From Saccostrea cucullata (lineage: Eukaryota), in NCBI RefSeq assembly GCF_032062105.1, contig NW_026921972.1, forward strand, positions 124,001 through 188,000: 64,000 nt of DNA, given 5' to 3'. Under the pieces are notes generated by a model. That model was not told the DNA's origin, did not search any database, and saw nothing but the letters and a program-made list of their open reading frames with translations. The translations under genes and the position numbers were made by a program. Shown here piece by piece: positions 17,051 through 24,111 of the stretch. Numbering within the stretch: position 1 is the first letter of the stretch; each line of letters opens with the position of its first letter.

Positions 17051-17671
17051 CTATCTAAGGAAGAAACGCATCATTTCAATGACCCCGAACACAAAAGAGA
17101 GAATGATTCCACAACACCACAAAAGAACACGCCGCACGATAGACTGATCCTCCATTTGTTCTTTATACTTGATGGCAATAAACAACACTCCATGATTCGA
17201 TTCAACATTTCTTAATCCCTCTTCAAATATTTGATTTCCCAGTTTTACGTCTTTATTTTGGTAACAGTATATCAATGACTGTTCCAGTGCAATATTTAAT
17301 TCTTCAGCCTCGTTGTTTGGCCATAACGGATTCATCGACGGAGCGCAGCTCTCATCTACTATAGACAGGACAATAAGGTTATGAAATCCGGCGTCCCTAA
17401 ATCTCCTCCAAGCTGAACGAATTTCCGATAGATTCCAACAGTCTACATCATTGTCTGGGAAGTTATGATTATTTTTCAACCTAGTATGTGTCTTTCCAAT
17501 AATGAACTCCTCTATTTCCTTTTTTAAATTCAGATCTATAAGCACCCGATTGATGTGTGCTATCATGATATCTGCAGCTGTGCTTAAGGACGTATCTGAA
17601 AAATCTACATCTCTCAGATGGAAACATATTCCTGTAGACCTGTGTGCGTTTGCCAAATCTATAATATCCAT
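17051..17671 (-). CDS. Uncharacterised protein with a putative GIY-YIG-like domain and C-terminal transmembrane helix, paralogue A
   Basis: 206-aa open frame, colinear with 23446-24111 along its whole length. Motifs FIIGKT, IRSAW, ALEQSLI, LGNQ, GVLFIA; hydrophobic tail. A splice acceptor (TTTTTAG) sits just upstream of the ATG in both paralogues. The confidence refers to the gene; the domain call is weaker. Confidence 0.85.
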   Translation of the reverse strand: MDIIDLANAHRSTGICFHLRDVDFSDTSLSTAADIMIAHINRVLIDLNLKKEIEEFIIGKTHTRLKNNHNFPDNDVDCWNLSEIRSAWRRFRDAGFHNLIVLSIVDESCAPSMNPLWPNNEAEELNIALEQSLIYCYQNKDVKLGNQIFEEGLRNVESNHGVLFIAIKYKEQMEDQSIVRRVLLWCCGIILSFVFGVIEMMRFFLR

Positions 17672-18074
17672 CTCTTCATTCTAATCTAAAAAGTTAAAAG
17701 AATTACGTTTAACTGTGACATTTAACCCCTTCCTTTAATACATGTAATTATTGCGAATCATTTAGCATCGTGTATTACGCGATAATGTTTTTTTTTCGAT
17801 TTACTAGATATTTTGCCCTAACTGAAACCTTGTCGACTTATGAAATACAATTATAACAATATATTAAAGACATAAAAAGCTCAGTATAAATGTATAAGGT
17901 CAATGCACATTTTATAAGAAAAAGAAAAGAAATCCAATGATGAAAGTTTAATCTGTATATATCATCATATAGGTTTTAAAGTCTTCATCTTCTTCAACTA
18001 AAAATCTCAATGTTATGATTTACCATTTTATGTAAAATTAAATCCATAGTGATTATGGTTATCATAATGAATTA

Positions 18075-19080
18075 GATGGAGGAAACTAACCGTATTCAAG
18101 CTTAAAAGTCAATTAAACAATATAAAATAGGAGCTGGGCAAACATGGACCTCCAAAACATCAGAGGTGGGACTAGGTACCATGGAGGAGTGAGCATCCCC
18201 TGCCGACCGGCCACACCCGCCGTGTGCTCCTTGTCATGATCGGGAAAGAACGATAAATCCGTCGTCAATTTAGTGTATACAGTGTATGGTAATTCAAATT
18301 CATTCTGATTGTTTGGAATATTAAAAATATTCAAAACTGATATTAGATTTTGAAGAATTTCTTCCTTAAAAAGGATATAAGTACAAGTATAAGTATAAGC
18401 AGGGACCAGTACACCCTGATCATGTAATCTATTTAATTCTTTTTTCACTTCTGGATTGTTGAAAACAGAAGGTTTTTGGAGTGCTCCTCAATCTTTTATT
18501 GCGCGATTTTAACATACATATTATGATACATTTAATCCATGATGACAAATTGTCAATGTCTTCTTCTTCATGCCTTGCCCATCGCCTGGCACAATCTTCT
18601 ACAGAATCCATAATATTTATGAAATTCCGACGGCAGTTGAAGGATTAGGGTTCCCTATATTTAGGACCTCTTGAGATTAGTGATCTACTCATTATTAACT
18701 ATATTTACGTCACCAGTAATAACGTGTCCTGCAAGACTATAGTTATAGGGTGAAGAACATGAACAAGATGGAGGACTATGTCTCAGATAATTGATATCCA
18801 GGCCCTGTAAACTTTTCTTGTAATCAAAAAGTTTGGAAGACATAGTCAATGTATATTTGTAGAAAATATATACAAGGTGTAAGTCTTTAACTTGAAATAT
18901 GGTGGAATACAAGACTGGCCCTTTTGTGATTAAGGATGTTACTTATATTAACCGAGTCAATGCCTTTTTGGCATATTAAAGTTTAAGGAAAAAACAGATT
19001 GTTTTGCATTTTTTCAGTACAGTAAACGCACGGGTTTAATAAGCCTACGGTTTGCAATATCCATAATCATATCCGAGCCT
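18075..19080 (-). mobile_element. Naiad Penelope-like element, internally deleted (CxC linker fused to 3' UTR)
   Basis: Encodes PPSCSCSS..GHVITGD and ISRGPKYRE (Naiad linker / RT N-terminus), then NEFELPY joined directly to the 3' UTR motif at about 18285. Confidence 0.85.
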
Positions 19081-19132
19081 GCAGATTAAGCAATCAAGTA
19101 TTTCATGGCACAAGTTCATACAAGTACCACTG

Positions 19133-19425
19133 TCACAGTAACTCAATAAGAAGAGCGCTCGCTCCGTGATAGGAAGATCGTAGATTCAAACCCCTGTCGC
19201 GGCGGATCCAAAGCAATCGAAAAAGGTAGCAACTGTTCCTTCGCCAAGCGCTTGACGTGAAAGTTGCGGGTCTTTCGGATGAGACCTTATGTGTTGGCAC
19301 GATAAAGATCCATCATTACTCAATGGCCCTGAGTGCTGAGTAAATGCACTTCACCTGTATATGGTGACGTCTCTATATGGGTGAAAATTGTCGAACTGGA
19401 CGTTAACGACATAAATTTAATCAAG
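19133..19425 (+). mobile_element. tRNA-derived SINE (bivalve Meta-SINE-like)
   Basis: Degenerate tRNA head (AGAGCGCTCGC..GATTCAAACCC), a central region GGTAGCAACTGTTCCTTCGCCAAGCGC and GTGTTGGCACGATAAAGA, and a tail ending GGACGTTAA. Confidence 0.6.
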
Positions 19426-21384: not shown

Positions 21385-21913
21385 GTTTAGTTTGTAGTAC
21401 CATACAACTGTACGCAAGATCAAAACACCATGATTGAGACAAATCGCTTGGATATCATCAGAAAGGAAGTTTAATGTGTTGTACGACGTAGAATTTTTCT
21501 GTGTTTATCTGTAGGTGGGTGGGAGGTGGAGGGGTAATGTGTGGTAATTTAACTAAAGGCCCTTTGACAATATAATTCAGAACTTCTTCGTTTTCCCATT
21601 ATACCGGATCATTAATATGAATAAATTACATGCATATACGTGCATGTGAAAATTGATAATAATGTTCATTGGGAATTAATTTTTAACGTGAAGTTTGAGT
21701 TTAAAATTATCACACTTACAGACAGTACCTCCCGATGAACAACCCAGTTAAAAGTTCCTTGAATCAACCACTCCGTTTAAATCTTTTTTGACAAAATCCC
21801 CTTTCTAACTCTATCCCCTGTGTTGATGAATTCCGCGGCGCCACGTAATAGTTTTTCACGGGCAATAAATCTTTGTCAATATAATAAAATACACACCATA
21901 CTAAGTGCTTTTT

Positions 21914-22100
21914 TAAGGAAGCGTATTAGTGTCATCTGGATACGTTATTTTTTTTTTTTATTTCTGCAGTTTAATCTGTTACAGTAACATTTACACTTTA
22001 ACCTGTAAATTTTACTGATTAAAGTGTAAATTTACATATTATTAAAGCGTAGAAAATAAAAAAATGTAAAGTGTCCAACTGGCACTAATTCACTTCCGTA
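21914..22100. mobile_element. Mini IS3EU-like MITE
   Basis: Imperfect TIRs TAAGGAAGCGTATTAGTGTCA / TGGCACTAATTCACTTCCGTA; 6-bp TSD CTTTTT (21908-21913, 22101-22106). Confidence 0.7.
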
Positions 22101-23445
22101 CTTTTTAAAACGTTAATTTGAAAAAACTGTAATTTTCACAAAATATTAATGTTACATATACGTATATTTTTTATCTTTGATAAACACTATTAAAGTCCAG
22201 TTGTTTGATTTCTTGATCATTCGCGTGGAATGTAAATTTCTCAGTTGAAAAGTCTATCAAAGTGTGTGTGATAAGCTTTAAGAAGAGAATTAAGTTTTTT
22301 ATTAGAATAAGCAGGCGAGTTATTTCTCATTACCAATGAATAAAAGAAGAGAAGTACAATAGCTTTCATGAAGTTTAATAAGAATATAGACTTTATTCAA
22401 ACACATTTACAAAACTCCGATAAACATCCACAAATATTTAATTTCATCTTTAATCTGCAAATTTCCGATATCTTTCGTGATTTTGACAGATAATTCTTGA
22501 GTTAATGAAATTTATTAGACGGTACCCAAAAAATGAAAGTGAAAATTTTAATAATCTCTCTTCTGTATCTGTTAAAAACCTTGATTTTCCTGTGCAAGGA
22601 GTTCATCGGTGCACTTTATCTTTCTTATTGAAATTTAAAATTTACAGAATGACTTGACAAATAAAGGCAACATTTTCCCGGGGTGAACAAACAAGTAAAA
22701 ATCAGACATTCGACGCTTGCGTGAGCAAGTGAGAGTAATGCCGAGGCCGCTGAGGTCACGGAAAAAAATTGAGCGAGTTTTTTGAACTGACTGTTACATG
22801 TACGATTATGATTATTTACTGTCTAGGTATCTGTTTCATTGGTAATGAATCATTTGACGATTACAGAGGTGACATGATGAAAGCCCTATCTTGATGTGAC
22901 GTTGTTATGCGCCAACGTCACAATCACGGTTGGTTGGGAACCTTTAAAGTTACTCTCTGATATCTTAGGAGAAGAAGACATCTGGTGTGTTATAGATTTT
23001 GAATTTACCAAATAGGAGTAAATGAAAATTTAGAACTTACAACTAGATTTTGTGTTCTTAATTTTGTACTTACTTTCACCAAATAAATCCAACACTTACC
23101 GCTAAGGGACTATTTTTATTTAAAAAATCATATAAAATAGTTGTTTTTACTTTTTATTAAATAATATTCAAGGTTCTGTGTAAAAATGCCAGGGCAACTG
23201 ACAATTCTTAGTAATGAATCATGTAGGCGTCGGAAGCAACTTCATTGTGTTCCTTTCTTGGAAGATGTGATTAGATGATATAAATGTACATGCATATATG
23301 AATACTTAATGCTTATTCTTTTATTAAACACGTTAAAAAATCATATACAAGCAAATGAGTGATTACTCATCAAAGGTCTATTTATTTCTTTATTTTCAGA
23401 TAAATAATTTTTGACAAAATAGTTATTTTGAAAAAGCCACGTTAT

Positions 23446-24111
23446 TTACTTTTTCCTTCGAGATTTTTTCTGTTTTCCGATGCACAATTTCAGGAAGAAA
23501 AACATAATTTCTATAACCCCGAACACAATAGAGAGAAGGATTCCACAACACCACAGAAGGTCGCGCCACCAGTTAGACGGATCCTCCACTGGTTCTTTAT
23601 ACTTGACGGCAATGAACAACACGCCATGATGGGAGTGAACTTTTCTTGCTCCTTCTCCAAAGTTTTGATTTCGTAGTCTTTTGTCTTTCTTGACGATTTT
23701 GTAATAGTGGATCAATTTCTGTTTCAGTGCAATTGTGAAATCTTCAGTGTCATTGCTTGGCCATAATGCATTCAGCAAAGGAATCTGATGCTCATCTATG
23801 ACAGACACGACAATAAGATTATGAAACCCAGTGTCCCTAAATCTCCTCCAAGCCGAACGAATTCCCGACAGGTTCCAAGAATTAATGTTATCGACTGGGA
23901 AGTACCAATTATTTTTCGACCTTGTATGAGTCTTTCCAACTGTAAATTCTTCTATTTCCTTTTTTGAATTTAGATATTCAAGCACCTCATTGATGTGAGC
24001 TTGCATGATCCCTGAAGCTGTGTCTAAGGATGTATTTGAAAAATCTACATGTCGAAGATGGAAACATATTCCTGAAGATCTGTCTGCGTTTCTATAACTT
24101 ATGATATCCAT
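23446..24111 (-). CDS. Uncharacterised protein with a putative GIY-YIG-like domain, C-terminal TM helix and basic tail, paralogue B
   Basis: 221-aa open frame with motifs FTVGKT, IRSAW, ALKQKLI, LRNQ, GVLFIA. TM segment LLWCCGILLSIVFGVIEIMFFFL is followed by KQKKSRRKK. Confidence 0.85.
   Translation of the reverse strand: MDIISYRNADRSSGICFHLRHVDFSNTSLDTASGIMQAHINEVLEYLNSKKEIEEFTVGKTHTRSKNNWYFPVDNINSWNLSGIRSAWRRFRDTGFHNLIVVSVIDEHQIPLLNALWPSNDTEDFTIALKQKLIHYYKIVKKDKRLRNQNFGEGARKVHSHHGVLFIAVKYKEPVEDPSNWWRDLLWCCGILLSIVFGVIEIMFFFLKLCIGKQKKSRRKK

Follow-up and report, generated by a model that had tools for sequence, protein, structure and literature searches.

A tandem pair of oyster genes with a predicted circularly permuted GIY-YIG-like domain, degenerate catalytic residues and a C-terminal membrane helix

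We have analysed a stretch of 64,000 nt from the oyster Saccostrea cucullata (NCBI RefSeq assembly GCF_032062105.1, contig NW_026921972.1, positions 124,001 to 188,000 of the forward strand), referred to below as the window; coordinates are those of the window unless another locus is named. It carries two paralogous genes, copy A and copy B, whose proteins are 66% identical. The first-pass annotation, made from the letters alone, had described here two open reading frames (ORFs) of 206 and 221 aa about 5.8 kb apart, each a single coding exon, with six motifs shared in a fixed order. The ORFs and the exon structure are as described, the spacing is 5,775 bp, all six motifs are present in that order in both copies, and splice-acceptor-like sequence lies upstream of each exon. 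The features at gene level are as follows.

17051..17671, reverse strand: coding exon of copy A (206 aa), the fast-evolving paralogue, its tail truncated by a stop (ORF and substitution comparison)
17009..17050, reverse strand: remnant 13-codon tail past the stop of A, sharing its frame with the tail of the downstream copy in S. echinata
17677..17687, reverse strand: possible splice-acceptor sites of A, together with an ATG that lies 8 nt ahead of the start and out of frame with it (from sequence)
23446..24111, reverse strand: coding exon of copy B (221 aa), predicted permuted GIY-YIG-like pseudonuclease domain with a putative tail anchor; conserved, apparently expressed
24116..24117, reverse strand: probable splice acceptor AG, 5 nt upstream of the start of B, where RNA-type contigs depart from the genome sequence

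Protein and profile searches of the 1.17 Gb genome, in which spliced members could be missed, found A and B only. The closest named protein is LOC133181449 of Saccostrea echinata (83% identical to B), a species that likewise has a tandem pair (locus L003, 10268-10957 and 15182-15853); word searches yielded only this protein and three family members. A more distant member of the same oyster clade, P0003, lies on 1.6-kb contigs from several sequencing runs.

Copy B is under strong purifying selection and therefore has a function. Its ratios of non-synonymous to synonymous substitution rates (dN/dS, computed over the soluble domain) are 0.15 and 0.11 against the two S. echinata copies and 0.10 against P0003, and its private changes are nine synonymous and four non-synonymous. 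Copy A has 11 synonymous and 52 non-synonymous private changes and a dN/dS of ~1.25, for which neutrality is not rejected (p 0.64) and which differs from that of B (p 0.0004); we infer that it is a duplicate freed from selection, or else under positive selection. The ratio between the two paralogues, over the same domain, is 0.51. The earlier claim that open frames were kept despite divergence thus stands for B, by selection; in A the frame is open, but the private changes look neutral and a stop at the site of a Leu in B has removed the basic tail. Since the 13 codons past this stop match the tail frame of the S. echinata downstream copy, the duplication is probably older than the species split, with gene conversion afterwards; the informative sites divide 18/8/15.

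Four sequencing runs, each from a different study of a related organism (~96% identical) and three of them only guessed to be RNA, gave contigs that span 23431-24116; such contigs cannot prove strand or level. At the AG at 24116-24117 two of the contigs leave the genome sequence and carry on for 29 and 77 letters that do not align, and the non-repeat flanks have no depth, which fits a spliced transcript. A dN/dS near 1 without expression, named beforehand as grounds for dismissing the pair, is not what is seen for B.

The two genes belong to a wider animal family. A profile search gathered 275 clusters (at 50% identity, E-value up to 0.001), with named members from Pinctada (pearl oyster), Mytilus (mussel) and the brittle star Amphiura; other members sit on gene-sparse eukaryote-type contigs. 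No Pfam, PHROG, PADLOC or NCBIfam model matches the domain: Pfam matched neither the pair nor a single one of 137 family rows, and a sequence scan of the PDB was likewise empty. Weak matches to the PADLOC model PDC-S05 were rejected, being at chance level, gone on re-scanning ten members, and assigned to a system described as RhuM-domain. Scanning by pattern, which detects close relatives only, returned none from bacterial genomes, viral contigs, phages or plasmids. We found no account of the family or of a permuted GIY-YIG domain in the literature covered, which leaves out most subscription papers; in the 2006 survey of GIY-YIG proteins (PMC1564403) the string ‘permut’ does not occur.

Family domains stand alone, are repeated within one protein, form gene arrays, or are fused to BTB, C2H2, TAFH, PHD and OTU domains. 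One locus (L047, 2475-16306) has eight tandem family genes in 20 kb and another (L058, 73-11167) encodes multi-repeat proteins; repeats of this kind are a possible way for circular permutation to arise. In one protein of 419 aa (P0060) a ~200-residue insertion splits the domain between strand 3 and the Glu helix.

Judged by its residues, the wider family mostly holds the GIY-YIG catalytic set of Tyr, Tyr, Arg, His/Tyr, Glu and Asn. Across 132 non-oyster rows, in the numbering of A, conservation is 99% for G59 and 95% for K60 of the xIGK motif, 89% for R87, 90% for W88, 85% for H or Y at 91, 88% for E130, 93% for N146 and 96% for Y164. The Arg, Glu, Asn and C-terminal strand Tyr occur jointly in 106 of these rows, with the YIG Tyr also present in half. 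Position 57 is Tyr in half of the rows, and its loss accompanies Tyr91 (coupling z 11.7), which may reflect a swap of the general base. Two family types are seen at alignment positions 57/91/161: Tyr57-His91-Tyr161 and Thr/Val57-Tyr91-Gly161. Lys stands at the Glu position in ~8% of non-oyster rows too, so that inactivation recurs.

The fold was approached through predicted structures. Foldseek matched a GIY-YIG domain protein of Yasminevirus (A0A5K0U8Q9; E-value 2e-5, probability 1.0). In the structure Atlas, query residues 1-170 matched a 113-aa bacterial cluster with T5orf172/MUG113 members (TM-score 0.81 by target, root-mean-square deviation 2.4), and the language-model features of an intact member (P0014) scored 0.92 to a cluster that is 77% PF01541. 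Some comparisons weigh against this assignment. No solved structure matches significantly or confirms the fold, and among solved-structure matches STING domains outrank GIY-YIG, but at chance-level Z. Profile comparison is also mute: neither the pair nor the family matches PF01541, PF10544 or canonical members, the best HHalign probability against GIY-YIG is only 10-20%, and alignment with cheap gaps reaches z ~4-5 to Penelope, Cho and I-TevI only. The proposed GIY-YIG ancestry is thus upheld by predicted structures and language-model features and not by solved structures; on balance, a GIY-YIG-like fold is probable.

In the canonical domain GIY and YIG form an N-terminal hairpin. Here the YIG-like strand lies at residues 56-61 and the strand with the Tyr (residues 160-168) follows the Asn.

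17489..17506, reverse strand: A residues 56-61, YIG-equivalent strand (Tyr to Ile)
23929..23946, reverse strand: B residues 56-61, YIG-equivalent strand (Tyr to Thr)
17168..17194, reverse strand: A residues 160-168, C-terminal strand in the putative GIY slot
23602..23628, reverse strand: B residues 162-170, C-terminal strand predicted to fill the GIY (beta-1) slot (Tyr to Phe)
17282..17284, reverse strand: A codon 130, GAA (Glu), probably derived; a single transition separates it from AAA, the codon in B, S. echinata copy 2 and P0003
23722..23724, reverse strand: B codon 130, AAA (Lys), at the metal-binding Glu position of the family

Coevolution seats the C-terminal strand in the canonical GIY slot, flanked by the YIG strand and strand 3, and so supports circular permutation. 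The best of 26,406 diagonals pairs the C-terminal strand with strand 3 in antiparallel (score 7.7), pairing with the YIG strand in the G59-Y164 register scores 5.1, and R87-E130 (z 6.9) and E130-N146 (z 7.3) are coupled. An N-terminal strand considered as the true GIY strand, 14-17 (GIC), was rejected, as it is coupled neither to the YIG strand (0.9) nor to strand 3 (1.6). One natural fragment from a tandem-repeat member, in which the GIY strand comes first, has a predicted fold with a predicted local distance difference test score of 90.6, and only with this fragment do the GIY-YIG chains 2lwf, 7wme (HIGLE) and 6seh (Slx1) appear among the 50 best matches, their alignments starting at model residue 1-6. 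Neither HHalign nor a scan of cut points separated native from permuted strand order. The permutation suggested by the first-pass annotation is thus backed by prediction and coevolution, and, given a GIY-YIG fold, we regard it as highly likely.

Within the GIY-YIG (URI) superfamily (UvrC N-domain, I-TevI, Cho, Slx1, Penelope; PF01541) the YIG-like strand, Arg helix, strand 3, Glu helix and Asn come in the same order as here, and a three-stranded antiparallel core with a central GIY-like strand is predicted here too. The animal family differs in its C-terminal GIY strand, an extra N-terminal strand and long helix, and insertions of ~20 residues that follow the YIG strand and strand 3. The closest predicted structures and features are the Yasminevirus protein and bacterial clusters of 113-132 aa that are in part labelled T5orf172, MUG113 or GIY-YIG; the full-length alignment of the 113-aa cluster to residues 1-170 suggests the same strand order in the models. 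These proteins fall short of the oyster ones by ~90 aa, which leaves no space for a tail region. The restriction enzymes R.Eco29kI and R.Hpy188I likewise have enlarged stand-alone cores with insertions and variant active sites (PMC2630997), but they keep the canonical strand order, are active and are paired with methyltransferases. In the same oyster genome two short ORFs (G000:C17673:43797-44051 and G000:C22172:5313-5558; L039 and L040) pass the cut-off of T5orf172 (PF10544), a GIY-YIG type mostly of phage, bacteria and giant viruses.

In the oyster clade this catalytic set is gone and a tail anchor is present. The residues at the six positions are I57, A87, F91, E130, N146 and F164 in A and T57, A87, F91, K130, N148 and F166 in B. 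Ala87, Phe91 and Thr/Ile57 occur in all five clade proteins and Phe replaces the GIY Tyr in four; at position 130 three of the proteins have Lys and one has Asn, Glu being confined to A. The Arg of the IRSAW motif is at position 85, invariant in the clade and Arg in 8% of the family, so that the reading of YIG, R, E and N elements in order keeps its YIG-like strand and Asn but loses its conserved Arg (87, now Ala) and, in four of five proteins, its Glu. The Glu130 of A is probably a derived reversion in a neutrally evolving copy, since its GAA differs by a single transition from the AAA found in B, the positional orthologue and P0003, with the caveat that a quick tree leaves the position of A unsettled. 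Activity is unlikely because B has no metal ligand and neither copy has a general base, and from these residues the pair is very probably catalytically inactive. K60, W79, W88, R85 and N146/148, around the former groove, are invariant in the clade.

The single hydrophobic helix noted earlier at the C-terminus is borne out in both copies by Kyte-Doolittle (KD) means.

17072..17128, reverse strand: A putative transmembrane helix, residues 182-200, mean KD 2.32
23491..23547, reverse strand: B putative transmembrane helix, residues 189-207, mean KD 2.54 (hydropathy and homology with A)
23449..23490, reverse strand: B basic C-terminal tail, 14 aa, net charge +8

The predicted structure of A has a helix over 176-205, and no N-terminal signal was found in A or B. 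All five clade members fit a tail anchor: none has a signal peptide, each has a single hydrophobic helix within ~30 residues of the C-terminus, and the tails are 6-26 aa long with a net charge of +2 to +9. Within the wider family a clear C-terminal membrane helix is limited to this clade, a single well-supported group with a stem of 1.56 changes per site in the quick tree, and the proposed membrane-tethered family thus shrinks to its oyster members. Under known tail-anchor rules, a tail of +7 to +9 suggests the peroxisome or the mitochondrial outer membrane. A functional analogue is TREX1, which holds a nuclease domain on an organelle through a C-terminal anchor, facing cytosolic nucleic acid, but has an unrelated DEDD fold and is catalytically active.

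The reading we favour, held at about even confidence, is a tail-anchored pseudonuclease from an undescribed animal family of permuted GIY-YIG-like endonucleases that binds nucleic acid at a membrane. In the models of the family the elements run from the N-terminal helix through the YIG strand, Arg helix, strand 3, Glu helix and Asn loop to the GIY strand, which is predicted to fold back to the sheet centre. In the oyster clade, as the sequences show, the catalytic set was taken apart, with Ala replacing Arg87, Lys replacing Glu130 and Phe replacing both His/Tyr91 and the GIY Tyr, and a C-terminal membrane helix with a basic tail was gained. The protein would be inserted post-translationally with its domain in the cytosol, the tail directing it to the peroxisome or mitochondrial outer membrane. 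The former groove, with Lys130 in place of the metal, the clade-specific Arg85 and a retained Lys60, would bind DNA or RNA uncut and hold it at the membrane, possibly for defence. Nucleic-acid binding as the present function is marginally favoured; a defence role is suggested only by the family arrays and domain shuffling.

With the same ancestry and anchor, the dead domain could instead be a protein-binding scaffold or adaptor on the membrane. The loss of the phosphate-binding Arg87, the modest net charge of the soluble domain (0 to +6 in B-type copies, −9 in A) and the long clade stem speak for this. The metal-site Lys, however, is kept across a saturated synonymous distance (dS ~2 to P0003) and the groove residues do not vary, and we consider a scaffold rather unlikely. 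Less probable still is a distinct alpha/beta fold, perhaps related to the STING ligand-binding domain, that would make the proteins membrane-bound nucleotide receptors: that domain is membrane-tethered and gives the top structural matches, but these are sub-threshold, and significant matches in structure and sequence were not found.

An active membrane-tethered nuclease, with A as the enzyme and B as its inactive partner, would draw on the Glu130 and Asn146 retained in A and on Arg85, two residues from the lost Arg87, relocated catalytic Arg residues being described in the R.Hpy188I family (PMC2630997). Yet A lacks all three active-site aromatic hydroxyl/His groups (I57, F91, F164), its Glu is a single transition from the Lys of the clade, its substitutions look neutral, its net charge is −9, its tail is lost, and protein and profile searches found no intact family member elsewhere in the genome. 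We therefore consider this reading, implied by the first-pass annotation, very improbable: the IRSAW Arg is not the conserved one, both tyrosines are gone and B has Lys at 130. A transposon or viral remnant, or functionless pseudogenes, might be suspected from the single coding exon, from the neutral-like A and from how common GIY-YIG domains are in mobile elements; this genome has 150+ Penelope-type matches. The two-copy number, the orthologous tandem pair in S. echinata and the apparent splicing of B speak against it, and the purifying selection on B out to P0003 refutes it for that copy. Though no comparison with Dfam or Repbase was made, the ORFs have no reverse transcriptase (RT), transposase, terminal or other repeat attached, and the 379 bp upstream of A match only themselves, as expected from the earlier view of host genes outside any transposon context. 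For the pair this origin is scarcely credible; for A by itself it is an even call.

Elsewhere in the window, two 22-bp minisatellite arrays (14512-14888 and 15514-16045) are mostly inverted relative to one another, and multi-copy LINE-like repeat fragments (18066-18279, 25921-26560 and 27475-28147) have dense RNA-contig coverage from a related oyster. Major facilitator superfamily transporter exons lie on the reverse strand at 1166-2443, 30668-31903 and 37645-38766, the first two matching PF07690, and 30590-32024 and 37617-39060 form a tandem duplication (90% identical). A VHL beta-domain ORF occupies 7082-7537 on the forward strand (PF01847, E-value 1e-13), and on the reverse strand 46985-49067 matches RT, RNase H-like and tyrosine-recombinase N-terminal domains in that order, as in a broken DIRS-type retrotransposon.

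Of these findings, the family with its permutation stands the more firmly, the oyster pair being a dead, membrane-anchored offshoot of hypothetical function. A speculative and rather doubtful extension is that the family, expanded in some lineages and bacterial in origin, serves innate defence, and that oysters have made one member into an organelle-anchored dead nucleic-acid sensor, which would be a new type of receptor where MAVS or STING act. A large family outside current Pfam, NCBIfam, PHROG and PADLOC models, mostly with a full catalytic set, would be a new nuclease family of marine invertebrates that lends itself to testing, and its arrays and domain fusions form a pattern typical of conflict or chromatin effectors. 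The oyster pair would be a nuclease turned membrane-anchored pseudoenzyme under purifying selection, which would bear on oyster immunity if induction or binding were shown.

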